The notes beneath the pieces were generated by a model. That model saw nothing but the letters and a program-made list of their open reading frames with translations, was not told where the DNA came from and did not search any database. From contig NW_021833076.1 in the NCBI RefSeq assembly GCF_006345805.1, positions 62,001-126,000 of the forward strand: a stretch of 64,000 nt of DNA, written 5' to 3'. Position 1 is the stretch's first letter, and every line of letters starts with the position of its first letter. The stretch comes from Octopus sinensis. Its lineage: Eukaryota. Positions 565 to 61,205 of this stretch are shown in pieces. A program made the position numbers and the translations under genes.

Positions 565-1459
565 ATGGAAGATAAAGGTGAGAATGTGAATTGGATGTAC
601 GACAACAAGATAAATAGAGAAGATTTCCTACTAGGAAAGAGAATTACAAATGAAGATGTAACGAATTTGGGTATCATTCGAGTGTGATCACAAATAGCTG
701 AGGAGAGCAAAAAACACCTCAAAATGAAGGCATACATGGACATGCAGGCCAAAATGCGGGAGGATCCTCTCTACATAGTCCGGTAGTCAGTCCACTCATC
801 ACTCGCAGGAAAAAGGAATTAGAGGCGAGGTTCAAAATCATCAACAATCCCATCAAAATGAAAAGACTGCGCCAACAAGTAGTGCTCCCCCTTCATTGTA
901 GGTCGAAAGAGAGTCCACCACTGACGATATGCTCCTCACCAGGTGGACAGTCCAACTCATCTGCAGGTACTTCAAAGAAATCGTGGGGCAAGAAGGACAG
1001 GAGCAGGGAGGCGAGGAACCCGAAACACCAAAAAAGCGTGAAGGGCACAAGAGGAGTTCACGTCACCACGAGGAAAGGCATTCTCGGTCTAGACGTGACT
1101 ATGCGAGAAGTGGGAGAAGAGGGGACAGCAGAGAAGAGAGGAGTGGGCGAAGAGGAGGCAGTAGAGAAGAGAGGAGAAGAGGGGAGAGTAGAGACGAGAG
1201 GGAGGAGAGGATGGCCAGAAGGAGGGAAGAAATGTCGAGGGATGCTCAGTTGCATGCTCAGCAAAGACTCAGTCGACTGACTGCGTATGAGAATAAAGTG
1301 AAGGAGGAGGAGACGGCGACTAAAAACATGTCTGCTGAGGGAACAGCATCCTCGCTGTACATTGGAGGTCTGGTCAACAAACATTCAGAGGAAACTAATT
1401 TGGAGTCGGAGGTGAGTCGAAGAAGGTACACGAATAAAGGAGTGGACAGAGATGACTGA
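565..1459 (+). CDS. CWC25: Pre-mRNA splicing factor CWC25 (5' end unresolved)
   Basis: Spliced translation gives NWMYDNKINREDFLLGKRI, DMQAKMREDPLYIVR|KKELEARFKIINNPIKMKRL and an RS/RE-rich tail. GT-AG introns of 27, 26 and 23 nt. The N-terminal MGGGDLN..SWHP segment was not found. Confidence 0.85.
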
Positions 1460-1496
1460 CTGTTATAATAAATTGGCATTTCAATTAGTATATATA

Positions 1497-3173
1497 TTAA
1501 TCAAACGGACTGTCGACCGGCTGGCGATACTTTGGATTAAAAAAGTTCCAAATAACAATGGTGTCGTCGTGCGAACACGTCATGATCTGGAATTTGTCGA
1601 ACATTAGTCTGAACACTCGCCCAGTGTGTTCCTGTCGGGTGGCACAACACGACTAACTTGTTTAGTGGCAATGCAGTGCTGACGGCTGTTCCACTCGGAG
1701 GACATGACGGAACGATAGTCCCATATCTTGATCTTACTAGGCAGTAGACAGAGAGTGCCAACGCATCGTAGGAGCCACTGACAATGTAGTCGTCACTGAA
1801 GCGAATGCATCTCACCAAGTCATCATGTCCAGACAACACACGCAGACATATTCCCTCGAAAATGTCCCACAGTCTGATCGTCTTGTCCGAACTCCCACTG
1901 GCCACAATGTTCCCCCGCTGGTGAAGACATGCAATGCCCCGTCTGTGCCCCATCAATGTGTTCCTGACTGTCAACGTCTCCCTCGACCAAACCTGCACGT
2001 GTCTAAACTGGCAAACTATTATAGAACGATCTCCCGAGGCTGTGACTATAAACTCGGAATTAAAATCCACCACGTTGACTGCCGCCTGGTGGGCGACCAG
2101 TTTTTTAACCTCGAGGACAGAGGGACCTTTATGGTTAGCCCACACGATGGCCCTGCCGTCCTGTGAGTGAGTGGAGGCAGTCACCTTGGAACACGTCACG
2201 AGAATGGAATTGTCGTATCGCAAGTACAAGACTGGCTGAGTGTGTCCCGTCAGTTTGTGGAGTTCCTTCCCAGAACGAATATCCCAAATACTACGAATAT
2301 ACACAACACACGACCGAATGGTGCAGTCGGACGACCCACTGATGACGTGCTCCTTGTCGAACTGGAGACACAAAACAGACCCGAAATGGCCAACAAAAGT
2401 GTTTTCGCACACCGAGTCTGCAATATTCCAAATCTAGAGTGAGTGATGGAGTGACCTTCACAGTGTTGTCTCGATGGCCGGACACTATTTTGTGGTCGTC
2501 GTATTGCAGACAGTACACCCCGTTGGTGTTATTGAACTCAATGCGGGAGACAGTGTACCGACAGGCCTTCCACCTCCTGTCGAGTTCCTGTCCACATTAC
2601 CCAATCACCCACGTTTATCTCCCTCTGGATTGCCCCGTACAACACTCGGTAAAAGTCCGGCTTCTTCACCATTCGGACGTCCGCAATGTGGAGGAACTTG
2701 CCCCTGCAATGAATTGGACTGCCAACCATCCCCTCCTCCTCACAATCCCCTCCCACACCGAGTCGATGCCCATTTTGTGCTCGATCACTGTCTTCCAGCT
2801 CAGGTGGATGCGGATTATGGAGAATATGGAAGTGCACGTGGACTCCAAGTTGAGTAGTGAGGCAGGGTCGAGATAATGGAGGATGCCTTTCACGATTTTG
2901 ACATGTCCGGCCTCTACAAATGGACTGGGCAATAGAACGGTGGAGAGACACGATTATGTTACACCCTAATAGAGGCTGCAGAAAAGAGTGCACTTCTGCT
3001 TTCTGGGCCTCGTCGAGTGAGTTTATTATTTCCATGCTCACTCTCACCTTCATTTTAAACCAGGTTGGCAAAACTTTATCGTTATCCTCAAGTTGGCTAA
3101 ATTTGCCCAACACGTCTCTAACTAAATCTGAATATTCTTCATTTTCTTCCAAACTTGAACTCAAATCGTGCAT
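1497..3173 (-). CDS. FBXW11: F-box/WD40 protein, beta-TrCP/Slimb family (BTRC/FBXW11)
   Basis: F-box ([17 protein letters not shown]...[10 protein letters not shown]) followed by WD40 repeats typical of beta-TrCP ([47 protein letters not shown]). About 9 GT-AG introns of 22-27 nt; stop TAA at 1497-1499. Confidence 0.92.
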
Positions 3174-3926: not shown

Positions 3927-5559
3927 CAGTCCGACCTCTAAATGGGGCACTAAGTGCCTCAAATCAGAGGTTTCCCCAAAAAAGAGGTTTTTCAAAAAGC
4001 TCAATAAATAAAGAAAAAGAACATTATTTTTTAAAATAATCAGTTAATTTTTCTCCATATTTATATTTATTTTTAATTCCTAACGACACTTTCTTTCTGA
4101 ATTCATAAAAATCATGAAGAGAATCTGGAATCAAATCAAAGATGTTTGTCTCTAAGTTTTCCATCAAACTTAAAATTTGTGATATTGATGGTTCGCAGCT
4201 TATATTCTCATAGATATTTGGATCATTATCTTCTATTTCATCAAAACATTTATCAATAACATTATTAAATATTTCTTCAGATGATTCATTTATGCAACTC
4301 GAGTCTGATGGAGATTGTCGAAAAACCTTTTGCCAGCAGTTATAAATAATATCCGCAGATACATTATTCCAAGCATCTGAGATTATTGTTACCACTTGCC
4401 GCAAATTTAATTTGGATAAAGACTATAAACAAATCCTGTTCGTCTTGAAAACATAAAAAATCAATTAGACAATTCAAATAATTATCCTTGAAATTTTTAA
4501 TGATTCCAGCATCCAATGGTTGAAGTATTGGTGTCGTATTTTTTGGTAAAAATAAAAAATCAACGTTGCTAAATGTCGATATTTTGTGGCAAGCAGCGTT
4601 ATCTAATAACATTAAGATTTTTCTTAAATGTCATCCACGCATTTTTGGACGAAGAGTATAAAATTCCATAAATTTTTGGAGAAAATTTTTGAAACATCTA
4701 GGATTTCTATATTTTCCGATTATTAATGGTTCAAATTTTTCTCCAGTGTAACTACAGCATAGATGAAGAGTAATTTTATCTTTACTCCTTTTAAAGCCCC
4801 GTGCCGAATCACCAGTTTTCACGAATGATTTACGTGGGGTAAGTTTGATAAAAAGAGAAGTTTCGTCACAATTAAAAATGTTCTCCTTTCCATATTGTTC
4901 AACTTTGATATTTAATTCTGATAAAAAATTCAAAATTATCGCATGATCAGCAGATGCGGATTCGCCTGACAATGTTCGGAATTTTAATTCATGCCTCTGC
5001 TTGAATTTTTCTAACCATCCATTTGAAGCTTTAAACTTGTTTAAGCCCATTCTCGAAGAAACAGTTAGGGAAATTTTTTTTAAAAGAGTTCCAGAAACTG
5101 GAACATTCTGATCCCTTAGACGCTGAAAAATATCAAGGACTTTTTCATCAAATCCGTTTTTATTTTCACTTAATGATGAGGAAAGAAATCCTTTTTTGAT
5201 AAATGGAAGAATATTCTTTTTTATACGAAAAATAGTTCCCTTGCTAGTATTGTACATTATGGATAATCTCCTCTCAGAATGTTCTTTCTTTAAAAGATGA
5301 TCAGCAATCTTCAACTTGGTTTCATAATTCAAAGGCATTACACAAGAAATTTGAAATGAAACGTGTCTTAAAATATTTATTTTTTTAATTGGTATAATTA
5401 ATTTTATTTAATAAAAAATCAATGCCCCAAATAGAGATGTTAAAATTAATTGATTTTTTATAATTTGGTTAAAAAAATTTATAATGCCCCAAAACAGAGT
5501 TTTCCCCAAAAAAGAGGTGCCCCACCCCTGGAGGTGCGCCCCAATTAGAGGTCGGACTG
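3927..5559 (-). mobile_element. Tigger/pogo DNA transposon, full length, transposase inactivated
   Basis: TIRs cagtccgacctcta / tagaggtcggactg flanked by TA at both ends. Transposase in three frames (5338-4024) with HTH-CENPB (KASNGWLEKFKQRH), FNCDETSLF, LLDNAACH and LQPLDAGII; frameshifts and an internal deletion near 4630. Confidence 0.93.
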
Positions 5560-12160: not shown

Positions 12161-12861
12161 TTAGCAACAGGAATTAACAGATTTGGATAGTTTGTCCAAT
12201 ACAACCCCAGAAGTGTCGCCGGTGGGGATGCTCGCACTATTCTTGAGGTCACTGCACACCAAGTCAATATTTCCTTCACATTTATGTTCTCCTTAGCAGA
12301 AGACTCAAAGAACCGCACTCCTATCTGTCAGAATGACCACCCAAATGTGCGGCCAACTCCTGTCCGTCCTGTGTGGAGATGACCTTCGTCTCGACCAAGT
12401 CAGATTTGTTGCCCACCAAGACGACTCGGGCGTTGTCCCACGAGTGAGTTTGTATTTGGGATATCCTTCAGTCAATCCCCACCCAAACCAGTCCCGGGCA
12501 GCCTGGAAGGACTCTTCGTTGGTCACGTCATACACCAGAATGAATCCCCTCGGTAGTAGGCCGTCGTGATTGTCCGGTAACGTTCTTGTCCGGCCGTGTC
12601 CTGTCACTCATCACTCCCCTCTACCCAGATTTGCAGTTTTATTCGCTTGTTGTCACGGAAAATGGACTTGACTTTGAAATCAATGCCCACCGTCGACACA
12701 AAGCAAGTACTGAAGGAGTCGTCGGCGTATCGGAAGAGGAGGGAGGTCTTGCCTGTGTTGCTATTCCCCACAATCAGTATTTTGAACATGTTGTCATACG
12801 AGTCCTCCCCTGCCTTGTCCATTCCTGTGTTGTGGGAGTTGATGGTTTTATAGTGGGCCAA
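12161..12861 (-). CDS. RAB3: Rab3-like GTPase; two frameshifting deletions in this sequence
   Basis: [29 protein letters not shown]|[19 protein letters not shown]|[34 protein letters not shown] and terminal NSCC*. Introns of 24, 23 and 20 nt; frame breaks near 12546 and 12266. Confidence 0.85.
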
Positions 12862-13197: not shown

Positions 13198-14080
13198 TTA
13201 ATCCCTGAGAGAATATCCCCTCCCCCATCTCGACCAAGAGGGGTAGTGGGGTGCACGTGAGTAATCCCCACCAAACCCACGCACTCTCACAGTGTCTCCG
13301 GCAAACATGCGTGTTCTAAGGGAATAGTGGCATAAGTACATGAAGGATGGAGTGGGGAGGAGTGTGGGTCGGCCGTGGATAGTCGGGTATTGTACGGCCA
13401 TGAAGTGATACAAATGCCCGGCCACAATCCCCACCAAGTCGTAGTAAAACCTGCAACTGAGCCCCCTCGATGTACGATTTATAGAGAATGAAATTGAAGG
13501 CAAGCAGAATCCAGGGAAGGTACACAGCCTTGAAGGTGGTGCCGAACCAGAAGGAGACGACCTGGGCTGAGTTGAACTGACACCAGACATACATCACGGA
13601 CATAACTAGAGGGACGGAGAGGAACTAGACTATTAAATGGGCTATACTGGGAATCCCACGAGGACGGACATGAACTAAAAAATACATCCCCACAGTACTA
13701 ACGAGGATAGCAACGGACAAAACAATGAGCATCCACACGTAGTCCCCCTTCCTGTTCATAAAAGTGCCTTCGATAGGGGAGGAGAGTACCTTCCTCGAGC
13801 ATGCGGGAGTAAGTGTAGAGGAAGTACATGTTCATCAGAAATACAAAGCCGGATTGGGGAGTCAGGTAGAACGTCAACAATGATGTAAGGGGTCGCCATA
13901 TCTAGGAATATATATCACTAATCCTCCCTCTAAATTGTAGACCACTCGAGAGGGGAGGTAGGCGAGGGAGGCATAGCTCAACAACCCGACATTGCCCAGG
14001 AGGGACAGTCCAGCAGTGAGTAATAGCCAGTAACGAGTCACGGAAGGAATAGAATTGAACCAGTCCTGGACATCAGACAT
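13198..14080 (-). CDS. DERL1: Derlin-1 (ERAD)
   Basis: MSDVQDWFNSIPSVTRYW, IWRPLTS, FLMNMYFLYTYSRMLEEG, VSFWFGTTFKAVYLPWILLAFN, GIVAGHLYHF and RWGRGYSLRD*. Six introns of 22-28 nt; the first has an atypical donor. Confidence 0.92.
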
Positions 14081-15157: not shown

Positions 15158-17780
<2,623 letters not shown>

Positions 17781-23061: not shown

Positions 23062-26000
23062 TAAAAATTCATCATGACATGATAAAACCAATCCAAGTCC
23101 GTCAGGTCACAGACAACCGCAAGCCGACCTGACGTAAACAAATAGAAATACTCATTCCATCTGTGACCGTAAGCTGTCGGACGAGCAAATATGAGAGAAT
23201 CTCAACAGGATCGTCAGTGCAAAGACCAAATCGCTCGTCATAAGATCTAACTCAAATCCCAAACAATACTTTTTCACAGATTCCAAACAAATAAGGGCCT
23301 CTCCATATTTACCATTAACCAACAGAACTCCAATATTCTGATCAACTGAACATGTGTACTCATCCGTTCCCAAATGAATCAACGCTCGGCAAGTTTTCTG
23401 GAAATTGTCAACCATTTGGGAGACATCTACGAACTAGAAATATAAGGACAGTCCAACTCCTTCGATGACAGAAGACGCAGATTTAGCGAGGTTTTGATAG
23501 CTCTCAATAAGAAGCATCACGCTGTACAACAGACTGAGAAATAACTCGATTGTCAGTTCATTGGAAGAAGACAGGCATGTGAGCACGGACTCGTAGTTTT
23601 CCTTAGATTTGTGCATTTGGATAATTCGAAACTGAAGTGCATTTGGAATGTATTCCTAGCCATTAGCAGAAATATATACTTCCGAGAAATAACAACAAAT
23701 GTACGGCCACCGGAACGTCGACGTATCAAACAAAGTAAGTAGTTGTTCTATTGTATAATTGGAGGGTATACTCAGACTGTCGTTCATAACCACAAACACA
23801 TTCATGGTCGACACTGATGCACTACACTGCATCGACTTGAGGAGACTAGTGAAGTACTCAATCAGCCCGATCAGACTCTTCTACAACCAAATACCAATTC
23901 ACCAACCCTAATCAATCGCCGGTAGAAGAAAAAAACATTATTCGTCCGCAAGTTGGGATCCTCAATGCGGGTAATGGAGGAACGGGGCGAATTGCCTCGA
24001 CTGCCAATTTGCTGAGGAATGTCCTCATCACTGAACTCGTTTATATTCACGTAGGAAATGTCGATTTCATCAGATTGTGAAGACGTCTTTGATTGGCACT
24101 AAAGATGAGGGAACTCTGGCAACATCAGTCTCATCCTCGTTATTCTCGCAGGAATAAAAAATTGTTTGTGCCTGTTCTTCGCTCTCGAATTTATTCTACA
24201 AACTAAAAGACCAGACAAACATCGTCACCGTAGAGAAAACGGAATGCCTTAGAAATGCAATAGTTGGAACTTTCCGAAGTCGAGGACATCATTGTCCCAT
24301 CTGAAAATGACGAAAATCACCAACTCTGCGAAGATATGGGATCTTCCACAAAAATATGTTCAGAGTTGACCGTCGACATTTTTGTGCGCGGAAATCTCGG
24401 AGTCAGCCCCAAGCGAGTCAACAGAGTGAACAAGCTGTAGTAAAAATACTCCTAAACAAGTGAAAAGGAATAAGCACACTGAAGAGTAAATAAAATCTGA
24501 GACCGGATAAGTCACAGAAAGGTTTTTAGACGAGTCAGTCCCCGATAGACTAAACTCGAGAATGCGACCTACAAACAGTGTTGTGTATAATTTACCAGGA
24601 AGAGAACAACCAATCTGTTGATCCAACCCCACAATGCTGAATACTCTCCTATAGGCTCTCCTGTATAGAATGTCGGTGGATTCAATGTCCATTAATTTGT
24701 CTTCGGGGAAATTGGAGGACTTGTCCACTACCAACTTCATCAAATTCATTGCCGTCGCAGAATTGGGAGACTGAATAAACATTGAAAGGGAAACATTTAA
24801 TGCCACGGTGGCAGTCACACACAGCTGTTTCACCGCCACCTCACTATTAAGCACTCCTTCGTCCAATTCGACCAGGGAGATGAGAGTTTGAAGGGCAGAA
24901 AAAGAATACCCACATGTTTCTACAATCTATGGAGACTACACAATCCCACGACTAACACGACAGACGAGCTGAACGCAGTCGGCCGAGGGAATGTGAAAGC
25001 AATCCTTTACATATTTTACGACGCATTGAATCCAAATTTTTGCACTCTTTTCAAATGTACGGGAAGAATATCGGCCCAAAACAGTCACCAAATTGTCACA
25101 TCTCTTCCTCGATTTGACAATCTTCAAATGAGCCAAAAGAACACCTCAATGATTGATGCAGCAGCCGACTGAGCAAATTGGTCAGGATCGTGGTAGTGCG
25201 ACGCCATGTAGGGAATCAAAATTAAGATGACGAGGGCCACCACATCTCTCGATGGCTTATAGAAGAAGACCTCGGAATAAAAAGGAAATAATTCAAAGAT
25301 CAAGCACCAAGCCAATGACTTGTTCTCTTTTTTTGAATAGAGTCCCTGCAAACATCGATACAAGAAAAGAAACATATAGAAAGTGGGGGAGAATGCCTTC
25401 AAAGTCATCAGACTGTAATCCCGCCAATTTATTTCTGAATACGTCCATTTGCAGTTTCCCGAATAGGGTCACGACCAACGAGCACAGTTGTAATCCAAAG
25501 AAATACAAAACATCATTCGACAACATGAACGCCGACCCACATGCGAAAACAGTCGAATATAATTCTTCCGGACACTCCACTTGGTGTTTATAACAATCAA
25601 ATAGTTTCACAGAGGTGACAAACGTGGACATTAACTGTGAAAAGAATTGTCGCTTTTATACTTAATGAATCAAAATAAACCTGAGCATCCTCGATGTTCT
25701 CCAAATCGACTCCCTCGACATAGTAAACCAACCTTTTGACAAATTCCATGCTGACGGGAATTCCCAGCGCCTCATATATCTACAGTGAATAGATTATCAA
25801 CACACCTGCAACGACCGAATGGCAAAGTGGGAATCAGGCGAGGAAAAAACCAAGTCCATACACAAGTGGGCCCATTTGGAATTCAAATCGGGCAAAATAG
25901 TACAGACTTGGAGAATATCGCAAACTAATGAAGACACCAAATCAGTAGAACAGACACTCTCCAAACAATTACACCACGTCCAGCGTGGAGTACTGAAAAT

Positions 26001-29000
26001 GTAAAAATACACGCACTCGGAAAATAGCATTCGCCTCAGTCTGTCCAATATTTTACTTGGTGAGTCACTCTCCGACACGGTAAATTGAGATCCATTGCCA
26101 AAGTGAAATCGAAAATAACTGGGACTCAGATGTGTGACAATTTTATGCAAAATAATCTTGCATTTTGGCAGTATCAAATCACGTGTCGAGTCAAGACCTA
26201 AGAATGAGGGGTCTGAAAATACCAAGAACTGCAACATGAAGAACGAGTGGCGCAATTTAGAGAAACTCGGCGTCTGTCGTGTGCATTATAATTTCCTCTG
26301 ATATAAAGAGAGCAGAAAAACAGCTGAAATTGAGTGAATATAGAAACATGGGAAAATCGCGAAGGGAAATGGATTCCACTGGGAAGTAGTCTTTTAAGTT
26401 CATAAACAAGGACGGGTTCACAGAGAATAGCTCATCTTGATTACCAAAATCGTCTTCAGGAGGCAAACTGGTCGACCCGTCTTTGATATAAAGGGAATCC
26501 TCTTTAAGGAAGGAATAGTATGGAATTGTCAGCGTTCGAGTGAATCTGCAGTTTGTGGGAGTTGGACTAATCAAGTCAAGTTGGACCTTCTGTAAGACGA
26601 CGTGGGCAATGGGGGACTGGACTATCCACCGCATAATACAATTACTCTAAGAGTCCCCAATTGGCACTAACCACCAACATGAATTTATTTGGCATGACCA
26701 TGGCCATCATTTTGAGATATTCATAAATCACTTCAAAGTTGTTGTGTACTGAACTCAGAGTTGACCACAGACAACCAACTTGAACAGCATATGAATCCAT
26801 GAACTTACAACATAGAGTAGCACAATACCTTAACTGTGATGAACATGAGGTTATTAAGAACAAGGTCAGTAATTTGCACACCACGACTGCTCTCGCTAGT
26901 CCGGACCAATTGAATATTTGCGAGCCACGGCTGCAGGACTTGGAAAATTGCCAAAAGCACAGAGTGAGATGCGATCAAGATTTTAGCCGACAAATCTAAA
27001 ACAGGCAAATAATATTTTATAACATAAAAACGAAATCAACCACTGACCTGAAAAAATGTTAATTGAAAGATGATCAAAAATATGCGAAAACTGAGTGGAC
27101 GGGGACTGGAAGTGTACTCCCTCGGAGGGAGCGAGGACATTGAACAAGTAATCAGGAAGATCGAGAGTGGAGAGCATCTTGTTTGATGACATCTCTAACA
27201 GTAATTGATGGGAGAGAGTGACGGCGTCGTGGATAGGAAAACAGGAAACAACCAGTGAAAATACAAATAACTCTATAAATAGAGAACGAGGCAAATGACT
27301 AGGAATATAATGATAAAACCAACCAGGCCAATGCAAAGGGTGCAAAGGATATGTAGTAGCGGGAAAACTCGTGGACTGGGGAACTATAGCAGTGACATAT
27401 GATATAATGAATGTGCTGCGTATCACTTCTCAACAATCCTCCAAACAAATGGGAACACAACATAGCCTACAATGAGGAGACGAAATAACATTATTTTCAG
27501 CGGCTTCGTATAGGCCAAAAAAATATCGACCACAGAACTCTTCTGCGTCGAGGAATGCGCCACAAGAGACCAACCGAATTATGGCGTCATCACACATTTT
27601 GACCAGACCGATGTCGCCACTAGGGATTGGAATCCTCGGTCTAGAACGAATATGGATTATAATCTACGAAATAGATCCAATACTGTTTTCCACGTCACCA
27701 CGTGACTTCCACTCTGAAATGAATTCAAACATGTCGAGTCGGACATTTGGAGGAATTAAGCTAGTTCGAATAGAGTCTATAGGGATTATATCCAGCAATG
27801 GGGACCAGGCAGTTGGTCCACAAAGAGCGAAAAAAAGGCTAGAAACAAAAACTTCTGTTCATACAATCCCGAATTATTCGAGTCGAAACAACAGAAGGCC
27901 GAATGCCAGTTAACCAGGAATTCAACGACAACGGAAATAAAGTCAGTTCTTCCAATGTGAATTCTAAAATATACTCATCTCGGGCAACCTTATTTTCATA
28001 TAACCATTCCGACACAACTGGGTGAGAGTTCGAATCACATTTGAACAAATCAGCATTTTCCGTTTCCTTCGGGAACTCTTCTCAACTTTTTTGTCGACAC
28101 ACTCTCTCATAATGGGGGATAAGTCTGAAATAACGTCGCTGGGGTCATAAATGAGACCAACTAGATGTTGTGCGCTGACAAATGGCCGAGAGACACGATT
28201 GCACATTCTGACATTTCAGGACTCTCCCCTCGAAGTGCTGATATGAATAGTCGCAGCATTTGGAGACAGGACATTGTGCCCATGTTTACACTCGCAGAGC
28301 TTTCGGAGACGTCGGATTTATCCTTTAAGAACCTAGAATTGTAGAATGATGACCACTCGTAAGAGTCGTTCAACAATGTGCAGTAGATCACCGAAAAGCC
28401 CTGCCAAACGGACACGAAGGTACTCCCATACTTCCTTGTGACTAAACTACGGAATAATGACGTCGTTTCTGTCCTTCTAAATACAAATTAGCAAATCACT
28501 TGTAGATGTTGGAAGAATGATTCGAATTGTTGTATAAAGCTACGAGACGCAAATGGATGAGGTGGACTGCAGTTGAAAAGACAGGGGACTCTCTCGACTT
28601 GTGCAGAAGAATCGAGTGGAGGAGTTGAGAATATATCTGAATCCATAGACCGTGACCGTCCGCTATGGACTCGGAATAGTCATGTTTTTTGAACATGGAC
28701 AAATCAGTGAAGAACTGACAAACTCTCCAAACCCAATTCAACTCGCCAGCACAAGGATAAATCTCGGCCACCTGGAAAATCACGGAAATAATTACATTCG
28801 ATACTCCTAAAAACTCGGATAGAAAACCCGGAAGTATATTCACCAACTCTTTGTCGATTGCCGATTTCAGAGACATCTCGGAATGCTTACGGAATAAGGA
28901 GGTGAACTCTTACACAGGTCAACTCATCTGCGACAACCAGCAATTGACAGCCGAGGTGTTTGGACGAAGTCTCAGGGAGAGTTAGAAAAAAAAGAGCGGT

Positions 29001-31260
29001 GCCTTCAATCGAACTAATGAAACAAGTGTCCACTCCTGTGGCCTTTTCGACAAAGAAAATAAGCCTCCTGGCTAATGAATTATACATGTTGTAGTGGAAT
29101 ATGTCGACAGGGACATTGAAAATAATGCTCACAGATTCTACAAATAAGGAACACGAGGATACTCTCAATAACCAGGGGAATTGATTCTGGATAGTTCAAA
29201 ACGATCGCCTGAAGAGACTCGAACGAGGTCCTATTCGATTAGACAGGAAAACTCACGCTTGCACTTCTGGGTCGAAATGGAAGCATAGGTTGGCCAGGAA
29301 ATGAATGTAATCCGGATCAGGACCGAAGAATCGGGGAATTGCGGCAATACACGTCGAGAATAAGTTCATCCTCAATCCTTTCTCGGTCACATTTTCTCCT
29401 TCTTTAAGGGCAGGGTCCACCCGGGAGACGTGGAATGGCTGGCCGACGTGTTGATCAAGTAATTTGAGGATTATGGCGAAGGATCGGGTGATGGATGGAA
29501 GGAAAGGGGACAAGGCGGAGGCACTGTCGTCACTAAGTTTGCGTGTCTTGGTCAGTTTATTGCTCATCACTGCATTCAATCCCTTTGAATTGAAGCACAT
29601 TGTGCCATGATTGGATTGTCCTCCCTCTGCGATAGAGAGGAATGCACATATCCCCACGAGCATTCGCTGCAATGAGAATATGAGTGTACCTCCGGATATA
29701 TATAACGAATATTCCTGTTCACGTGAAGAAGGTCGTAAATGATCTCAGTCACCGCGAATTCAAGTTTGTCCTTAAAATATCACAACACCCAAACTTTGGC
29801 AATAAATTGGATTATTTTTACAAAAATGGCGATCGGACATTCCTTGGGGACAATGTTCTTCCCCCCGCGCGGGAAAATGGCGGAGGTGATAGACAAAAGT
29901 CGAGAACGCGTCGTCACGTTGTTTTCATAGTTAACCCGTGTGGTGTACACCCTAGCATTGAGCACAAGCACGCGACACCATGTCAGTCTATATATGGCCT
30001 CCAGGGCAATCCTCCGCTTCTTCTGGTCCTTGTTTTTCAAATTCGAAAAGCAAATCGACAAAAAGACCGGAAAGTTGGCAAGAAAAAACTCTTTGCAGCT
30101 CACTGATAAAAGGCATGCTGTAAGGGGGAAGAAGGACTTGATTGAACAAACAAAACAACGTTGTTAAAGCAACTTTTTTTGGAGGCCAGATAAAGGCTGG
30201 GCTCGTATAGCAGCGACACGAACTTTTTGATGGCCGGCACGTTGGCACTGTTGTTGATTTTCTAGAAATACTCAAACGGACTGACAGGAGCCATTTGAGA
30301 GAGCAAGTCCACAAACAAGGAAGAAATGGCATGGCGGATATTCCGGTCTTTGACTTTGATGAAATACTCCCCGATTTCGGTCAAAAAGTTAATTCCGTGG
30401 ATGAACTCGTCGAGACATGTCAGCTACACGTGAGAATGACAGTCCCACCTTTATTCTAAAATGTTTGATGGCGTGAAACAGCGAAATCAAATTCTGGGCC
30501 ACCAGAGGAGTCGATTCTGACGATTTCAGCTTGGAAAACTTTTCAGAGAATTTGATTCTGATAGTGTAGAGTCTGGTGTGTGAGAACTATGGGAGAACCG
30601 TGACTCGGAGACGACCCCCACGACCTCTGCAAACATTTCGAGGATGATATTGGCATCCTGAGTATCGAAGGGCATGCATCTGCCATGTTGAGGGGGGACT
30701 GACTCGTCGGAGTACTCAAAATGCCTGAATGCCTCGTCGACAACTTCATCGACAATCCGAGTGCAGCCGGGGTGGAGGGATAGCTTTATTGAGGACAGGA
30801 CGAGTACCTGGGTGAGTACCTCGGTCAGAACAATGCAGTATATATATTTGGTCAAGTGCTGCAGGCGGTTAATAGGGAATGTACGTTGTGCTTTTCCACA
30901 TTCTCGTCGATACTTGATTTAGAATAAATATGCATCACCCTGGCGTGGTCTCGATGATTTCGGCTCGATACCACGACTGCAGAGACTTGAGCACGGAAGG
31001 CAGACAGTTTTTCGACAGGAGGGAAACACTGGACACCAACTTGGACACTCAACTGTTCGCACTTACCTTCATAAAATAGGAGTCTCCGTGAATGTTCATT
31101 GCCTTATTCACTGGGCAGTTCTGCGGGTCACATTTAAGTAGAATACATAGGACGACTTGAGAGCAGTGTATATTTTGAACGAACTCAGGTTTAGTAATTC
31201 GGAAAAAACGTGTCGGACGAGGCTTTCCCCGGGGTTCGTGTTGCTCGTTTTGTTACTCAT
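23046..31260 (-). CDS. FRY: Furry/Tao3 scaffold protein (NDR/Hippo pathway)
   Basis: N-terminal NPGESLVRHVF, CLPSVLKSL, NVPAIKKFV, CFSNLKNKDQKKRRIALEAIYRLTW|VY, IFPRGGKNIVPKECPIAIFVKIIQFIA and NLFSTCIAAIPR; the C-terminus resembles the Fry end. The 5' 2.4 kb was traced through about 14 canonical 23-28 nt introns; the middle was not fully traced. Confidence 0.9.
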
Positions 31261-38100: not shown

Positions 38101-38145
38101 TTAATAATAAAAATTGGGATTAAATCAAAAGGGGTGGTTTTAGAC

Positions 38146-49000: not shown

Positions 49001-49721
49001 GGAACACCGGATCACGATCGGGGATCTTTGGGAGCGTCCGACATTGGCCCTAACGTTCTTGTTAGCCACCGGCTTCCTTCAATTGAAGGGGCCGGGGGTA
49101 AATAAATAAATAAATGTAGCCTTAAATTCAAAGCGCGATTTTGTCAGCATTTGTCATTGCTGAGGAATGCAGGATTGTGAGATGATTGATTTGAATTAAC
49201 TTTGTTTTAAAACAAGACAAAACCATCGATTATTAGCCAATCAGTTAACAGGTTCCAATTAAATCAGTCCGTAGAAAGCTGAGAATAAGGCCTATAAATA
49301 AGACCGTGGTTGCTTAAATTACAAATACATTAAATCCGGATCTGAAAATAAAAGTGAAATTTAGGATTGACAAGTCACTTAAACAAAACATAATATTTTA
49401 GTGAAATTGGTTAATTACGAGTTTACGTAAAACTGTAGTTATCGTAAAAGTAGTAGTTCCCGGGAGGGTCCTCTACTTTGATTGCGTTTTGGCTGTTTGA
49501 CCAATCGCTTTTTCCATTCTGTTTTAAAAGCGGGATTTTTTCTTGCTTGATTAGACTCAGCAAATTGTCAATGCTCCGGGAAAGACCTTTAATAGGACAC
49601 TGACAAAATTAGTGAGAGATCTGCACCGTAATTCTGGGATCTGCTTCTTCTTTTACAGATTTGTTAATTCTGGTCTTTCGAATCCCCTGCTTCTTTTTCT
49701 TCTTTGGTTGTGTAGTGGAAC

Positions 49722-52500: not shown

Positions 52501-54270
52501 ATGGTGCGTAGTATCTATATTTCTTTATTATTTAAATCCTTAATAATATCTCATTATTTTTAGACCAGCACAATATATTACAGATTAAAGACAGCCTCAA
52601 ATTACGAAACTGTCCAATTTGAGGGTGATAGAATCTCCTTACTTGGTCTAAAAAGCATTCTTTCAAAAAGGAACAACCTCCTCCTAAAATCAGGACTTTT
52701 TGACTTGGTAGCACAAGACGAGAGAACATTAACCAGTAAACATAACTACAAGACTGTTAGAATATGAATGTGACAGTGACCTTATATCCTCCGACTCCCG
52801 TCTCTCCATTTCCCGGATACCGTCAACACGGAAGTTGCCGACCCTTTCGAGTGACCCTCCGAGAGTATCCGTGGTTTGTATTCTGAATGAATGTGTAGAC
52901 AGCCGAGAATGTCCACAAGCCACCCATAGAGCCAGTAAAGTCGAATTTGGTGGAGAATGTGAATAAAATATATTTAAATAACCAGCCACAGGCATTTCTG
53001 GACGAATGTGAGAAGATCAAGGCTCTGACGGAAGACCCCAAGTACGTGAATATGCACGGGAAACCTCTCCCGACTGGGAAACTGCCTCCGAACTACATTT
53101 GTCACAGATGTGGGGAACCAGGCCATTGGATACAGAATTGTCCGAGTATAAAAATAGTATTAGTTTGGCTAACGGAAGGGCCCTGATGGACGTCCTCTCC
53201 GGTCAGAGAATCAATTACAGCCAGTAAAGCGCAGTTTTGGAATTCCCAACTCGTTTCTTCGGCCTGTGAATGACCCCAATCAGCCGGGGGCAGTCCTGAC
53301 GAGAGATGGACAATATGCAGTTCCCCTTATCGACGCGTACTTGGTGGTGTGTCATGTGCAGTGAGGCATATTCACGTGGAAAAAGGGAGAGACCCCCCTT
53401 TGTGGAGAACGAGTGCAAAGTGGAGACCAAAAAGGAACATATTCCGCCAGAGTTGTTATGTCCATTGTGTTCTAAGCTTATTGACGACGCGGTCGTGCTG
53501 CCATGCTGTCACGAACCAGTGTGTGATAAATGTGCTTGTTTGTTTGATAAGGATTAGGCATCACAGAGGCACTTCTTAGTACTGATGACCATCGTTGTCC
53601 TCTTTGTAGTCAGATGGACGTGTCACCCTGTCAATTACTCGCCAATTTGTTTCTTAGAAAGAAGGTGGATGAGTACAGAAGTATGTCTGTCACTAAACGT
53701 TATCTTGATTCGATATCGTCTAATTTGCCTGTTGATGTGTAATGTATGTGTATGAAGGGTAGAGACAGACCTCGGTCATCTCCTGTCGGCAAAGATAATG
53801 AAAGGGGCAGGGGAGTCACTAAAGAGGCCGTGGACAGTTTTATACGGCAGGATCCCTTGATGTCTCTCCCAGCAATGGCTAGTATGATGTACTACCATAG
53901 AATGATGATGCCGTACTTTCCTCCTTTTGGAATGCCTATTAGTATGGCCGTGTGTCAAATGTGTAGGTAACAAGCCTCGTCAGTTGACCAAGGAAGAGTT
54001 TTATGCACTTAAGGAGTCATATCGACAACAAAACTCGAGTCCCAGTTCCACTTATTCGAAGAAAAAGAGATCGCCCAGACGACATGAGTCGAGGTTGGTG
54101 GGACATGGCATTGTAGGAGGCGTGATAAAAGTAGAAACCAGTTGGATGATGTACGCAAGTCGGACTACAAGTCGCCCAATTCGGTCTCCACTAATGATTC
54201 TCGGGCGAGGAAGAGTAGACATCATTCTCGGTCACATCGTAGAAGAAGTCGACGTTCTGTTTCTGATTAA
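52501..54270 (+). CDS. RBBP6: RBBP6/Mpe1 (DWNN, zinc knuckle, RING, RS tail)
   Basis: DWNN (TIYYRLKTASNYETVQFEGDRISL), PPNYICHRCGEPGHWIQNCP, RSFGIPNSFL, IPPELLCPLC..DAVVLPCC and an RS-rich end. The first coding exon is ATG only, followed by a 60-nt intron. Confidence 0.92.
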
Positions 54271-54479
54271 TAAATACAATTTTGTTTTTATTTCTTAATT
54301 GAATAGTTTTATTTAATCAATTTTACCTATAAGGATTGTGCAAATGGTACATGTAGAATTTTAAAATTGATTGGTCCATGGCGAAACCAGCGGTCTGGGC
54401 TCCGGCTGCAGGAGAGGGGGTGAAAGCCTTTCACGTCCACCGTACCTCCGCATCGACAGGATCTTTAGGGGAGCGAAGA

Positions 54480-55390
54480 CCGATCCCTCAGAACCTCACG
54501 GGAAGTTTTGCTTGCGACCAACCGATTTCCTATCTGCAGCCTCTTACTCGCCCCTCTGTGTCTTGCACGCTCAACTCATCAGAAGATGAAATCAAGTTCT
54601 CAATTCGAGCTTTTGGTAAATGCAGCTGCGGGGGACTTGATGGCCTCCACCTGGGCCACATCAACGACCTCACTTCTCCCTTAACTGGCGAGGCAGGCAA
54701 CTCTCTGATATCCGCTATAGCCGCTCTAGCCGGTAAGATACTGAACTGGGATATCCCTTACTATGCGAGGAACATGCTTTTCTCAGCACATCTACTTGCA
54801 TTCCGGAAGAAGGATGGCGGAATCTATCCCATAGCAGTTGGAAATTACTCCCGCCGCCACGTATGTCCCCGCCTAAGTTTCGAATTTGCTCCTATCAACT
54901 CGGGGTGGGAGTCGCCAACGGTTGCGAGGCCGCGGTTCACGCAGTCAGAAGTCTTTTCCTTTTTAACAGCACACTCAAGTCCTCCTACGCAGCTGTGAAA
55001 CTCGATCTTCGCAACGAATTCAACAGTGTGAAGAGAGACTATATCCTCGAGGCTTGCCTCAAAAGGGCTCCGGAAATCGCCCATTTGGTTTTCCTATCCT
55101 ACGGCGAAGAGAGCACGTTCATCTTTGGTAATGAAATAGTCCACTCCCAGACAGGAGTTCAGCAGTGAGACCCGCTCGGGCCCCTCCTCTTTGCACTTGC
55201 AATGTGCACTCTGTTGAATCTTCGTTCAATCTATGGTACTTGGATCCTCGGTTTGTGGATCTATCGATGATATATCCAGCAACCTCTTACACCTAATTTC
55301 TGCCCACGAACACCTTAGGCTTAAAGTAAATAAAGAAAAATGTGAGCTCATAAATGTCAACTACCCGCTGGCAAATTTTTCGACTCAAAA
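54480..55390 (+). mobile_element. Degenerate CRE-clade non-LTR retrotransposon RT fragment
   Basis: GGLDGLHLGHINDL, FRKKDGGIYPIAVG, QLGVGVANGCEAAVHA, KLDLRNEFNS and GVQQ*DPLGPLLFALA; frameshifts and a stop. Confidence 0.85.
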
Positions 55391-55519
55391 AAGTCAAATG
55401 GTACATTTTTGTATAAAATATTGTTTTTATTTCTTAATTGACTTATCTAATTTAATCAATTTTTATTTGGTTGAAAGCATTCAACACGTCGTTTAATGCT
55501 ATCGAAGTTGCTAATATAG

Positions 55520-55650
55520 TTTGTGGGTCATGTTTTCGCTGTCATAATTTTGGTTACATTGCATCTTTCTGCAAGGAGTCTCTGCGCTTTTTCCTATGTG
55601 GGGCATGCATAAATCAGATAATTGTCCTTCCGTGTGTCAATTGTCAATTG
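55520..55650 (+). mobile_element. LINE ORF1 zinc-knuckle relic
   Basis: CFRCHNFGYIASFCK...CVNC pattern. Confidence 0.45.
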
Positions 55651-55715
55651 TGTCAATTTTTTCTGTTTTTTGAGCCATTTCGAAGTTTATCTTCTGTAAC
55701 CATTTATCGAAAATA

Positions 55716-56481
55716 TCAATCGTCATCCAAGCATTTTTTGATGCAGTGTACAAAACCTAAAAATAATCTAATACAACATACTCCATAATCTTCAGTTTTT
55801 ATATTTTTTAAGCATCTTGGAGATTTGAATTTCCCGATAACAAGGGGCTTTAATTTCTCACCCCCAAGGCTGCAGCATAAAAGAACCGAAACTCGTTCTT
55901 TACTTTTTGTTTTACCGAAACAGTTATCATTCGAAGACACAAATGATTTACATGAATTCTTTTTGACAAAAAGGGATGTTTCGTCACAGTTGAAAATATC
56001 TTTTTTCTCGAATTTATCAAATAAATTGTCGTACTCATTAAAAAAATCTTCGATCTTATCTTTGTCGCACAAGTTCTTTTCTCCGGAAATTACTTTAAAC
56101 AGTCATTCGTGACGTTTTTTAAAACGATCCAACCATCCATTCGATGCTTTAAAATTATCGAAGTTAAGGTTCGATGCAATTTTTTGCAACAGTTTTCAGG
56201 AGAAATCCTGAAACTGAAATCCCATCTTCTCTCAAATTTTTAAAAACTTCAAAGACTAATCGATCAATTCGAATAGAAAGATCTGATTCAAAGTTCTTAA
56301 ACGAGTGTTCATCAGAGCACGTTTCTGCTTTTGAAAATCCTTTTCCAATTTCTTTTTTAATTCTTGAGACAGTTCCTTTCCCAATATTATATAATCGACA
56401 AATTTTTCTTTCAGAAATATCTCCTTTCATTAATGATTCGGAAATCGTTTGCTTCAAGTTCTGACTAAGCTTCGCTGGCAT
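55716..56481 (-). mobile_element. Tigger/pogo transposase fragment, related to 3927-5559
   Basis: HTH (ISERKICRLYNIGKGTVSRIK), KASNGWLDRF, FNCDETSLF and KERVSVLLCCSLGGEKLKPLVIGK. Truncated; TIRs not found. Confidence 0.85.
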
Positions 56482-56552: not shown

Positions 56553-57008
56553 GCCCCAGTAGCTGAAGACTATGGATGTTGGAATTCAAACGTCGTGGGT
56601 TCGAATCCGATAGAACCAAGTTTTCAGCCGGGGTCAAATCTTGTCAACGTTCCCCACCCGTGAGGCGATGAGTCCATCTGGCACGACACAGATGTCGAAA
56701 GGGGGACCTCCTACCTTCCCCTGATCACATTACCGATGAAGAATCTCCATTATGCAAAAACCCGTCCGGATTCAAATGAAGTGCGGTGAGCTACGGTAAG
56801 AGGCTGACAAATGGGAACTGGACATACCAGAAATTCCCCACCTCTCTTTGGAGACGGATGGCTGTAATGAAGATTTGGAGGCTAATGTTGATCGGCACAA
56901 GCAATCCCTTCGTTCCTTGCTCCTTCATTTGATTAGTTAGTTGTGACTGTTTGTGCTGGGCTTGCCATGTTGTGCAAGCTTGGGGGTTATAAATAATAAT
57001 AATAAATA
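56553..57008 (+). mobile_element. tRNA-derived SINE, full length (about 455 bp)
   Basis: tRNA-like head with degenerate A box (tagctgaag) and B box ggttcgaatcc (56598-56608), a structured body, a 3' part shared with 43113-43322 and a (TAA)n tail. Confidence 0.8.
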
Positions 57009-58417: not shown

Positions 58418-59367
58418 ATGCGAATAATAAACAGCAGACAATGCCACGCACCGCAGTGTAAATTCCAAAGCAGACCCAATTCAAATTACTGCGGAGTTGC
58501 CTGTGGAATAGCACTGGCTCACAAGTAAAAGTAAATATAATACTAAGGCGCCTAAAAGATGCTTTCAAGGACAACGAATCATTAAGAACAGAGACTACCT
58601 ATGCTGCAGAGTCACACGACCTCACAATTATTGCCCAAATAAAGAAGGATATCGCCAAAGTTCAGCTCTCCCTTCTCGAGACTGAATCCAGACGGAAGGA
58701 CCTGCTGGAACTAATCGAAAGAGGAAAGAAAATCCCAATAGAAGACACATATCAGGTTGCCTAACCCAGTCCCACGTACAGGAGGAGAATGAGAGTGACA
58801 GACACGTCATGAATTGTTTTATATGTGGAAGTGAAGTATTGACGAGTGCATATTCCCGTCATGTCGATAAATGTTTCAGAAAAGTAAGCAAATTGAATGA
58901 ATTCAGTGCGAATCCAAGACTTTCTGTTCATCTCACTTTCGTTCACGAATGGAGAGTGTGTTGTGTGATAAATACAGTGCTTCCTCCAAGTCGTACTGCA
59001 AGCGACTCAAACTGCTCTGTCCAGTCCATTCCAAGCCATTTCCTGTTGTGGGGATAATTAATGTTTAGAGGAGGGCGGAGGAGGTTTGTGGCTTCCCTGA
59101 TGAGGGGAGTATGGCGTGTGGAGTGAGTAGGGATGTGTACTCGTTTTGTGCCACATCTGCCAAGAAATGTGGCCTTCATGCTGACTGGGATCGGCTGGCT
59201 TTGGGGAGGATAGATTTGGAGAAAGTGCGGCTGGTATTTTAGTTTTGTCAGGTTAGAATATCGCCAAGGAGGAGTTGTTTGAGAGGGAGAGGAGGCACAG
59301 GATGGAGATTGCATCCAGGGGGGGTATTCCGGCCATTTTCCTTAATCTGACTCAAAAACTGAATTAA
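58418..59367 (+). CDS. CXXC1: CFP1/Spp1 (COMPASS subunit), C-terminal region only
   Basis: QCHAPQC...SNYCGVACGIALA, CFICG...RHVDKC, LCDKYSASSKSYCKRLKLLCPVHSK, EVCGFP, LHADWDRL..GRIDLEKVR and EELFERE match the CFP1 C-terminal half. Five canonical 23-26 nt introns; open frame. Confidence 0.88.
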
Positions 59368-59885
59368 TGAATTGGGACTGTCCTGGGTGACCATGTTAAA
59401 ATATTTATTATTTTTTTCGAATTCGAAATAAATTAGAAATTATAATAATTATGGATTTTTGAAAATGTTTTTTTTTCTTCTTATCTCTGATAATAAATTT
59501 GTCTTTTAGCTGATTTTCGAGGACGTAAATTCTTATTCTGGAGGTTAATAATTCGATTTCTAACTCGTTTAGAATATCTGTTGATTTGTATTCTTTGCCC
59601 AATCTTGTGTTTCTGATTTGTAGGGTTTGTGACATGAATGAACCGAACTTCAATTTGAATTTTGTGACCCAATTTGATTTATTTAAAAATTATTTAATTT
59701 ACTTAAATCAAGTAAAAAATAATCAGAGTTTTTAAAAGTGTTAAAAAAACAAAATTCTTTAAACTTACTAAATTAGCTGAGTATTGAAATGAGTAAAAAA
59801 TGATGTTTTATAATAAATTTTTAATAGTAAATTCAGTTTCATATAAAGAAGAATTAAAAATGTTAAAACCAAGTGAAATAGAGTA

Positions 59886-61205
59886 ATGCTCAGCCAAGTT
59901 GAACAAACTTTCTTCTCTAAAAACTCTGAAGGATGGACAACATTTTACAAAGTATAGTCCAGTTGACCACCTCAGAGACAAATATGCGAGTTTTCCTGCA
60001 ATCACTACGAAGAATGCTCTCATGCCCAACACTTTATTAAAAACCGGAAGAGAAACCGTTATTCGGACATTCTGCCTTGTTGTGTGCCATTTCACATTAT
60101 AGCTGCCAAGAACAGAGTCATTTTGAAGAATGTTTCAGAAGACTACATCAACGCCAATTATATAGTTATTGGACAAGTCAGTCGCAAATATATTCTCACT
60201 CAGGTTTGGTTTCAGTATTAGTTAGGCCCCTCTTGATTACACTGCCGGACATTTCTGGCTGATGGCACTCCAGAACAAGTCAGAGACCATCGTTATGCTT
60301 ACCAAATCAAATGTGTCTTTATAAATATAATTTATAGACAGAGCGCTACTTTCCAACCAGCACAGATATAGGGATGGTTTTCCCCACTGAGGATATATCC
60401 GTACAGTTGGTTGATGTACAAGCCTACCCCGCCTTTGTGTGGAGAAACATGCGAGTGGAACATAAGGTTGGGTTAATTGTATTTTTGAAGGAACAAGTCC
60501 TGTTTGTGAGGCACTACCAATTCGACTGCTGGCCTGATTTCGGAATTCCTGACGATTTAACTGATTTTATGCAGTTTCTGGCCTTTCTTCGGTCGAGGAA
60601 GGATCTTGAAAGTTCTAAAATGCCTATAATACACTGCAATGCTGGGGTCGGGAGATCAGGATGCTTTGTTCTGATAGACTCGACCATTTTGGAGGTAAAG
60701 AGTGGTCCGTATGTCTGATTGAGTTGTATTATCAAAATGAGAGTTCGATGCAAGTCGACGTTGAGCAGAATCTTATTAATCTGAGAAGACAGCAATTTCA
60801 CCTCGTCAAGTCCCCGTCTCAACTTGCTTTTTGTTACCAGGTCGTCTTGGTCACGGGAAAACTCATTTTGGAAGGTCACGATTGGATTTTCAACGTTTTT
60901 GTTAATATTGACTGTAGTACCTGGGAGACGGTCTCCAGTCTTGTTCTGTTTCGGAAAGACGTCGAAACAAATCTGATGATGAGTGGGACGAGGAAGAGTC
61001 CTCGGATGATGAAGGAGTTATTTACACGTTCTTTTATTTTAAATATCTTAGAATTGATGAACAAGATTTTAGTATAGCTGATTTATCTGCTGAGTGTTCA
61101 GAGGGGTCTTATCCTCGTTGGGGCATTTATTTAAATTGGTACACTCTGGCTGGGATGTCGTTGATGTTAGCCATTTGTGTGTCTTTATATTATAAGATTT
61201 TTTGA
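59886..61205 (+). CDS. PTPN1: Non-receptor tyrosine phosphatase, PTP1B/TC-PTP type
   Basis: GWTTFYK, KNRKRNRYSDILP, DYINAN, YILTQ|APL, WPDFG, HCNAGVGRSG and a hydrophobic C-terminal anchor. PTPN1 versus PTPN2 is not resolvable here. Confidence 0.88.

Follow-up and report, generated by a model that had tools for sequence, protein, structure and literature searches.

Introns of 20–28 nucleotides (nt) call into question the minimum distances that textbooks set from the 5' splice site to the branch point and from there to the 3' splice site. Such introns are found in many genes of the window considered here, a 64,000-nt stretch deposited under Octopus sinensis (contig NW_021833076.1 of assembly GCF_006345805.1, positions 62,001–126,000 of the forward strand), in which coordinates are counted from the first letter. 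The tiny introns of Paramecium span 20–34 nt. That Dicyema has extremely shortened introns was reported in 2010 by Ogino (Gene 449:70), as cited in the intron passages of PMC6543705, which also give a genome-wide median of 27 bp for Dicyema sp. (Zverkov 2019); the corresponding passages on Dicyema japonicum report a mean of 38 bp (Lu 2019, PMC6736024). In Hadjez 2026 (PMC13644364), the medians for myxobolids are 22–27 bp, and introns are about as short in D. japonicum. In that study, the splice motifs are reduced to ‘GTa’ and ‘AG’, polypyrimidine tracts are absent or very short, and weakly conserved A residues lie farther from the AG in longer introns. U2 and U2AF are conserved in myxozoans, and how such introns are recognised is said there to call for further studies. 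A ‘molecular caliper’ has been proposed for introns of 18–21 nt in the nucleomorph of Bigelowiella natans (Gilson 2006, in the passage of PMC6009652 that cites it). In the 15–16 nt introns of Stentor the branch A is fixed at position 10 or 11, and two branching factors, Cwc25 and Isy1, show alterations (PMC9505925).

An earlier note on this DNA, drawn from its letters, had held that its introns are mostly 20–28 nt long, that they are defined by length rather than sequence, and that introns of this size are reported in dicyemids. The last point agrees with the medians and means in the passages cited above. In the window, the medians of the two intron sets described below (24.5 and 25 nt) fall within the dicyemid and myxobolid pattern, a median of ~22–27 nt with most introns under 30 nt. 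The likeness to dicyemids, with their median of ~24–27 nt and two thirds of introns under 30 nt, extends to intron-dense conserved genes, a genome rich in long interspersed nuclear elements (LINEs), splice motifs that are little more than GT and AG, the lack of a polypyrimidine tract, and a weak A that lies farther from the AG as length grows (from 6 to 8–9 nt in the window). However, donor position +3 in the window shows no preference for A (A7 C4 G6 T9) as opposed to the reported ‘GTa’, the acceptor keeps a preference at −3 and a G at −4, and the G+C (GC) content is 41%, compared with 36.7% genome-wide in the dicyemid. Myxobolids share the median of 22–27 nt, the reduced donor and the A residues ahead of the AG, and myxozoans have kept conventional U2 and U2AF (PMC13644364). 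Conversely, Henneguya salminicola has 29% GC and myxozoan genomes are described as relatively poor in transposable elements, whereas the window has several LINE and pogo elements besides its higher GC. Gene content, LINE load and intron sizes are compatible with a dicyemid, and a myxobolid is also possible.

Both the phenomenon and the hypothesis of length measurement are already in the literature, and the window is thus another instance of them, with nothing categorically new. Its contribution is a small, clean and homology-anchored set of introns in which a branch-like A holds its place, the acceptor preference is ordered, and AGs are tolerated before ~20 nt and avoided after. GT..AG pairs of the right spacing have not been cleared from the exons. 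The positioned A, the AG pattern and the unpurged exons favour a compressed conventional mechanism with distance thresholds over a pure ruler. The main text of Hadjez 2026 (PMC13644364) and the intron passages of PMC6736024 and PMC6543705 make no mention of AG exclusion, a first-AG rule, undepleted decoys or GC and GG donors.

Micro-introns defined by homology

Introns were defined with a protein-to-DNA aligner in which their ends may fall on any bases and no length above 12 nt is preferred, run with and without a small tie-break bonus for GT/AG. The references were six VCP homologues, human beta-TrCP1 from a PDB alignment, Rab3C and Derlin-1, and the resulting anchored set comprises 26 introns: nine in VCP, nine in the beta-TrCP-like gene and eight in the Rab3-like and Derlin genes together. 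Boundary-free alignment of VCP left nine gaps of 19–27 nt at the same sites in five to six of the six homologues, beta-TrCP1 gave nine gaps of 22–27 nt, and Rab3C and Derlin-1 added eight more. GT..AG can bound 24 of the 26 gaps within the slack of the alignment (at most one residue); the remaining two have a GC and a GG donor, and the acceptor is AG in all 26. Once the introns are removed, one frame and no other is open in every coding sequence. Anchored lengths run from 20 to 28 nt with a median of 24.5 and a standard deviation of 1.85 (20, 21, 27 and 28 nt once each, 22 and 23 nt three times each, 24 and 26 nt five times each, and 25 nt six times).

A second-tier set of ~75 introns, with a median of 25 nt, comes from the Furry-like, CAP-H, HRD1-like, ankyrin, RBBP6-like and other genes. 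It was obtained with an unsupervised gene finder that starts with a flat length prior of 12–150 nt and without a splice-site matrix, and then trains itself. With GT..AG ends the finder showed an early excess at 22–29 nt and then converged on ~100 introns of 20–29 nt, whereas the control pairs GA..TG, TC..CA and TG..GA gave only 5–14 introns of this size in the same pipeline. These counts and the 26 homology gaps uphold the size range given in the earlier note, whose quoted examples were all recovered: gtagaggggagtgatgagtgacag in Rab3, gtgagtttggtgagtgactgagtag and ...gagttgaag in VCP, ...tatcgaag in Derlin and ...aataaag in Furry. Two other approaches were set aside. A count of GT..AG pairs linking two long open frames suffered from too high a background of overlapping open frames, and the flat-prior finder by itself gave a peak at 22–26 nt together with numerous spurious ‘introns’, either long or antisense. 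Once trained, the finder fuses adjacent genes and misses the THADA-like and kinesin genes as well as in-frame introns. As the Furry homologues have ~32% identity and noisy junctions, only gaps agreed by several of them were used; many Furry junctions are equal in length between the finder and the homologue alignment.

Lengths divisible by three are not avoided (7 of the 26 anchored introns). Three 24-nt introns of the beta-TrCP-like gene are in frame and stop-free, so that they are detectable only as 8-residue insertions relative to the human protein, and two Furry introns of 24 and 27 nt are likewise in frame, stop-free and seen by homology. For annotation this means that in-frame, stop-free introns of 24 or 27 nt escape the logic of open reading frames and would be called insertions of 8–9 residues. 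Judged from homology and from the control pairs, the micro-introns are genuine and far beyond chance.

Splice signals and skipped acceptors

Donor information beyond GT is almost nil. G occupies −1 in about half of the introns, +3 is without preference in the anchored set, +4 is weakly purine and +5 weakly G. The interior is enriched in T and poor in C, with a GC content of 42–47% compared with 52% in the flanking exons, and single introns range from 79% purine to 68% pyrimidine. A polypyrimidine tract between the branch point and the AG is a feature of metazoan introns. Here, there is only a 3-nt T-rich patch at −7 to −5, where T reaches up to 60%; in the anchored set, the median length of an intron's longest run of pyrimidines is 3 nt, and 6 of the 26 introns are at least 60% purine. 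The earlier note was therefore right that no consistent tract exists, although this T bias remains. Upstream of the acceptor, A is enriched at −10 to −7 (45% at −8 against a background of ~20%) and depleted at −6 to −4, and G is found at −4 in ~40%.

The −3 base is T or C in 82–88%, A in 12–14% and G in 0–4% of introns (T14 C9 A3 G0 in the anchored set). The AAG acceptors pointed out before are real but form a minority, with 3 of 26 in the anchored set, 11 of 77 in the gene-finder set and 18 of 84 in the finder run without a splice-site matrix, in which the whole 3' pattern persists. GAG acceptors are absent from the anchored set, and at least two of the four GAG calls by the matrix-free finder are known errors. 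With regard to the suggestion that both splice sites are relaxed, it is supported for the donor, which is near-uninformative past GT and in two junctions best fits GC or GG. The acceptor, in contrast, keeps the hierarchy Y > A >> G at −3, so that it cannot merely be called relaxed.

In each of the 26 anchored introns an A lies within positions 16–19 from the donor, for which composition alone would give ~0.61^26, ~3e-6. The peak is at position 17 in 13 of the 26 introns and at position 18 in nine. By length, it lies at 17, 17, 18 and 18 for introns of 23–26 nt, and in the matrix-free set at 17, 17, 16, 18 and 19 for lengths of 23, 24, 25, 26 and 28 nt, while its distance to the 3' end grows from 6 nt at length 23 to 8–9 nt at 26–28. 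Around this A there is Y at −1 in 69%, Y at +1 in 75% and T at +2 in 59%, with a tendency towards T-Y-A-Y-T-T, and the most over-represented words are CATT, CTCA and TCAT (z 4–7). The context resembles a weak version of the yUnAy branch-site consensus.

The skipping of nearer AGs, also noted before, is well borne out. Internal AGs are present in 18 of the 26 anchored introns, eight of which hold a good YAG ending 13–19 nt from the donor. AGs that end before position 20 are as frequent as in shuffled interiors (66 against 67 expected), whereas those from position 20 to the acceptor are depleted (6 against 16.8 expected, P 0.003), as are non-GAG AGs in the same interval (4 against 12.9 expected, P 0.002). 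The shortest anchored intron measures 20 nt. In 26 of 26 anchored introns (24 of 26 if GAG is counted) and in 66 of 71 gene-finder introns, the acceptor is the earliest AG, GAG aside, that ends 20 nt or more from the donor. In Rab3 12321–12340, Derlin 13625–13647 and Derlin 13451–13475, a YAG located 4–6 nt before the acceptor overlaps the best yUnAy-like A or lies within 3 nt of it, as expected if the branch site is the reference for finding the acceptor and an AG in its immediate vicinity is unable to reach the active site.

Two junctions depart from GT. In VCP 15901–15927 (−), all six homologues need a 27-nt gap to keep the invariant FDKARQAAP (FDKA/RQA), and do so even with the bonus for GT/AG; a GT donor would instead mean an 18-nt GT..AG intron (15901–15918) and an insertion of 3 amino acids (aa). 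In Derlin 13902–13927 (−), only a 26-nt gap starting with GG keeps the loop from TM1 to WR at the length of human Derlin-1, and the GT alternatives of 44 and 17 nt make it 6 aa shorter or 3 aa longer. Both introns have the usual A at 17–19, the T-rich patch and a TAG acceptor. An ab initio run that allowed GC, GG and GA donors added one candidate, GA 11411–11433 in CAP-H, for which the coding model is too weak to judge. The GC and GG donors thus appear as the best fit to homology, with sequence error possible.

Length measurement, compressed splicing and other explanations

The claim that length rather than sequence defines these introns would, in its strictest form, correspond to a pure ruler or caliper: the spliceosome removes whatever lies between a G(T) and an AG ~20–28 nt apart, and the interior is irrelevant. 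The very narrow length range, the degeneracy of the donor past GT, the GC and GG donors of normal length that best fit homology, the good YAGs passed over at 13–19 nt and an A peak that follows distance from the donor are all in line with this idea. However, across 3,968 nt of exon in the three genes with the best anchoring, 115 GT-N20-28-AG pairs occur for ~26 introns (~4.5-fold), compared with 109 ± 9 in synonymous-codon shuffles, and 16 kb of coding sequence contains 438 compared with 422 ± 18. Since these pairs are abundant and undepleted, spacing together with GT and AG is insufficient to define introns, and under a pure ruler such exons would be ruinous. Furthermore, a donor/acceptor matrix trained only on gene-finder introns separates the anchored introns from exonic decoys of 18–31 nt with an area under the curve (AUC) of 0.91, and of 0.90 without the length term. 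The A at 16–19 in every anchored intron, the position-specific preferences for T, G and Y, the avoidance of GAG acceptors and a composition that is not strongly AT-rich argue against a ruler as well. The nucleomorph of Bigelowiella shares with the window, in the source passage cited above, the very narrow length range and the idea of GT–AG spacing as a recognised feature. Its introns are AU-rich, with invariant termini and no discernible branch A, whereas those of the window have a positioned A, a 3' context, a modest contrast in composition and unpurged decoys; neither the lack of an internal signal nor the strong AU bias expected of a caliper is found here. A pure ruler therefore seems improbable. 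Of the earlier claim, the part that stands is that distance matters, as shown by the absence of introns under 20 nt and the depletion of AGs after that point; distance probably acts as a threshold and helps to choose the branch A, and would not replace sequence.

The micro-introns are most probably genuine introns of the U2 type, compressed to about the smallest tolerated size and subject to minimum-distance constraints. Their ends agree with the GT (rarely GC)..AG termini of that type, apart from the one GG donor, and their removal restores both the frame and colinearity with orthologues. U12-type introns were considered and rejected, since donors of the ATATCC type and branch sites of the TCCTTAAC type are both absent. 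In the proposed mechanism, the spliceosome would assemble across the intron (intron definition), the branch site would lie at least ~16 nt from the donor, and the acceptor would be the first usable AG at least ~5–6 nt past the branch A, which places it ~20 nt or more from the donor. Nearer AGs may be skipped because those upstream of the branch site or overlapping it would be invisible to the second-step active site, which they would never reach. The narrow range of 20–28 nt could then result from two minimum distances, long-term shrinkage and the purging of later AGs, and not from a spliceosome that gauges length in place of reading sequence. Distance probably aids the choice among many candidate A residues, because the A peak holds at 17–18 nt from the donor as length varies. 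Stentor (PMC9505925) offers a parallel, with a branch A near-fixed from the donor, a conventional spliceosome and similar steric arguments, but ciliates are not animals, their introns are AT-rich, and length in Stentor is near invariant, compared with 20–28 nt and rare longer introns in the window.

Several points weigh against the reading of compressed U2-type introns. Junctions and branch points are predicted from DNA and homology, and the gene-finder set is partly self-trained, with ~10–15% of its boundaries wrong. The branch-like motif is weak: an unguided Gibbs search reached 3.75 bits compared with 3.2 in shuffles, with GT[C/G]A[T]TT at broad positions. The placement of the A relative to the 5' or the 3' end is barely separable (0.29 against 0.26 bits), because lengths are so narrow. 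Additionally, 38 exonic decoys pass the threshold that retains 21 of the 24 scored anchored GT introns, and some recognition information is still unaccounted for. Lastly, non-GT donors in 2 of 26 introns exceed the ordinary U2-type level, which fits spacing that compensates for a poor donor. A bolder variant takes up this last point: the first half of the intron would be a true spacer, the branch A would be picked mainly by lying 17–18 nt from the 5' end, the second base of the donor would be dispensable, and the branching machinery would be co-adapted to a 17-nt lariat loop, for example through a CWC25 without its N-terminal domain. We regard this variant as unlikely; if true, a metazoan would possess a form of U2-type splicing defined in part by distance. 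The non-GT donors and the gene for a CWC25-domain protein without the N-terminal domain are leads worth following, with the non-GT donors as the most interesting residue of the analysis.

Two further explanations do away with RNA splicing or with the introns themselves. Like the internal eliminated sequences of ciliates, the segments could be cut out of DNA, or the window could be a germline-only version of the genome. Their short size would agree with this, and so would the unusual circular DNA contigs that the relevant passages of PMC6543705 report in dicyemids; the window itself offers no direct support. However, the termini are GT..AG in 24 of the 26 and never TA..TA as in ciliate eliminated sequences, a branch-like A and an acceptor context are present, and transcript evidence for the splicing of such introns has been published for Dicyema and myxozoans, which together make DNA elimination barely conceivable. 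The other explanation is that assembly indels, decayed pseudogenes or forced open reading frames mimic introns. Errors or decay do exist in the window, since the Rab3-like gene requires two 1-nt frame corrections. Nevertheless, the gaps measure 20–28 nt rather than 1–2 nt and occur at ~30 sites in essential, highly conserved genes, their termini and internal features are specific while control dinucleotide pairs fail, and the three in-frame insertions of the beta-TrCP-like gene, visible by homology only, are not products of frame-forcing. An artefact is accordingly extremely improbable, and frameshift artefacts in particular were ruled out by the size and specificity of the gaps.

Genes and mobile elements of the window

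The window is eukaryotic DNA of ~41% GC, in which recognisably metazoan genes, identified with our own gene finder and with Pfam and PDB searches, are packed densely (Table 1). Besides the genes listed by extent, Derlin-1-like, VCP/p97, kinase and tyrosine phosphatase genes are present. The closest match of the VCP/p97 product has 70% identity, and no near-identical protein is on record. PDB searches with the kinesin-like and kinase proteins (at the thresholds set) and with the CWC25-domain protein gave no match, and an Rfam scan found no small nuclear RNA genes in the window.

Table 1. Micro-introns and genes of the window (termini are given as donor..acceptor; positions of skipped AGs are counted from the donor)
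Feature	Position	Strand	Length (nt)	Termini	Remarks
VCP/p97 intron	17625..17650	-	26	GT..TAG	same gap in 6/6 homologues
VCP intron	17418..17442	-	25	GT..TAG	skipped TAG ends at 8; has CTAAT; exact in 5/6 homologues
VCP intron	17313..17336	-	24	GT..CAG	6/6 homologues
VCP intron gtgagtttggtgagtgactgagtag	17095..17119	-	25	GT..TAG	skipped GAG ends at 22, its use leaves in-frame TAG; unconstrained gap 22 nt, sole GT..AG solution with open frame is 25 nt
VCP intron	16290..16315	-	26	GT..TAG	skipped CAGs end at 5 and 15; 26-nt gap in 6/6 homologues; GT..AG placement 2 nt off the tie chosen by the aligner
VCP intron ...gagttgaag	16141..16165	-	25	GT..AAG	skipped GAG ends at 19; exact ELVQ/YPVE, 6/6 homologues
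VCP intron	15901..15927	-	27	GC..TAG
VCP intron	15792..15812	-	21	GT..TAG	21-nt gap in 6/6 homologues
VCP intron	15552..15573	-	22	GT..CAG	unconstrained gap 19 nt; GT..AG solution costs 1 aa
Beta-TrCP-like intron	2914..2938	-	25	GT..TAG	skipped CAG ends at 14; spliced alignment to beta-TrCP1
Beta-TrCP-like intron	2704..2726	-	23	GT..CAG	beta-TrCP1 alignment
Beta-TrCP-like intron	2588..2612	-	25	GT..CAG	68% purine
Beta-TrCP-like intron	2434..2455	-	22	GT..TAG	beta-TrCP1 alignment
Beta-TrCP-like intron	2291..2314	-	24	GT..TAG	in frame, stop-free; 8-aa insertion relative to PDB 6ttu_T
Beta-TrCP-like intron	2161..2184	-	24	GT..CAG	in frame, stop-free
Beta-TrCP-like intron	1993..2016	-	24	GT..CAG	in frame, stop-free; skipped CAG ends at 9, TAG at 14
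Beta-TrCP-like intron	1737..1762	-	26	GT..TAG	26-nt gap; yields YDA/KIK, human YDGKIK
Beta-TrCP-like intron	1632..1657	-	26	GT..CAG	beta-TrCP1 alignment
Rab3-like intron gtagaggggagtgatgagtgacag	12601..12624	-	24	GT..CAG	79% purine; QIW/DTAGQ restored relative to Rab3C
Rab3-like intron	12466..12488	-	23	GT..AAG	G-rich; Rab3C alignment
Rab3-like intron	12321..12340	-	20	GT..TAG	skipped CAG ends at 16, its use leads to a stop codon; read directly from sequence
Derlin-1-like intron	13902..13927	-	26	GG..TAG
Derlin intron ...tatcgaag	13768..13789	-	22	GT..AAG
Derlin intron	13675..13702	-	28	GT..TAG	exon lengths equal human Derlin-1, 35/35 residues
Derlin intron	13625..13647	-	23	GT..TAG	skipped TAGs end at 6 and 18
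Derlin intron	13451..13475	-	25	GT..CAG	skipped GAG ends at 10, CAG at 19
CWC25-domain gene intron	671..697	+	27	GT..TAG	demanded by open frame; spliced protein matches PF12542
CWC25-domain gene intron	783..808	+	26	GT..CAG
CWC25-domain gene intron	879..901	+	23	GT..TAG
CWC25-domain gene intron	943..966	+	24	GT..CAG
Furry-like intron ...aataaag	30784..30807	-	24	GT..AAG	in frame; gap in 5 homologues, 2 with exact boundaries
Furry-like intron	29952..29978	-	27	GT..TAG	in frame; 27-nt gap in 5/5 homologues
Tyrosine phosphatase intron	60204..60225	+	22	GT..TAG	skipped CAG ends at 11, TAG at 17; ILTQ/APL restored relative to PTPRS
CWC25-domain splicing factor gene	565-1459	+			Pfam PF12542, E 8.8e-11
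Beta-TrCP-like F-box/WD40 gene	1540-3053	-			PDB search/alignment
Condensin CAP-H-like gene	10073-12089
Rab3-like gene	12161-12822	-			very similar to Rab3C
Furry-like gene	23152..31260	-			~40 predicted micro-introns
HRD1-like gene	33069-34538
Ankyrin gene	49933-51948
RBBP6-like gene	52764-54300
Divergent kinesin motor gene and Trm732/THADA-like TPR gene	18578-20188 and 41668-42180	+ and +			poorly modelled by own gene finder

The CWC25-domain protein begins right at the NWMY motif, and no Cir_N-type N-terminal domain of CWC25 is encoded in the 564 nt upstream of the gene. In other eukaryotes, the N-terminus of CWC25 extends into the active site during the branching step. This recalls Stentor, where Cwc25 is altered at its N-terminus (PMC9505925).

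With regard to the Rab3-like gene, the two frame corrections fall near 12546–12549 and 12270–12277. The first falls within GGGG, and the conserved ‘AM’ of YYRGAMGF is missing there too; the second is at ATATTGAC. The gene may be a decaying pseudogene, or the assembly may carry homopolymer indels at these sites; its three introns still look normal. The alignment of the tyrosine phosphatase settles the single junction given in Table 1. For the junction that follows ...KSGPY (60700–60760, +), the options are a 29-nt GT..GAG intron (60713–60741), a 50-nt GT..AAG intron (60705–60754) and a non-canonical 41-nt gap.

Mobile elements are found at 4027–5407 (−), 61417–62990 (+), 45763–49109 (+) and 54357–56460 (+), and comprise two pogo/Tc5-like transposase genes (HTH_Tnp_Tc5 and DDE_1) and intronless reverse-transcriptase frames of the LINE type. 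The reading frame at 36978–37856 (−) is without a Pfam match, and that it represents another mobile element is only a guess. A perfect direct duplicate of 43 nt occurs at 282–324 and 2660–2702, and its second copy lies antisense within a beta-TrCP-like exon. Dispersed repeats include 21953–22087 and 22929–23061 (96% identity over 135 nt), as well as 43118–43320 and 56793–57006 (81% identity over 214 nt).

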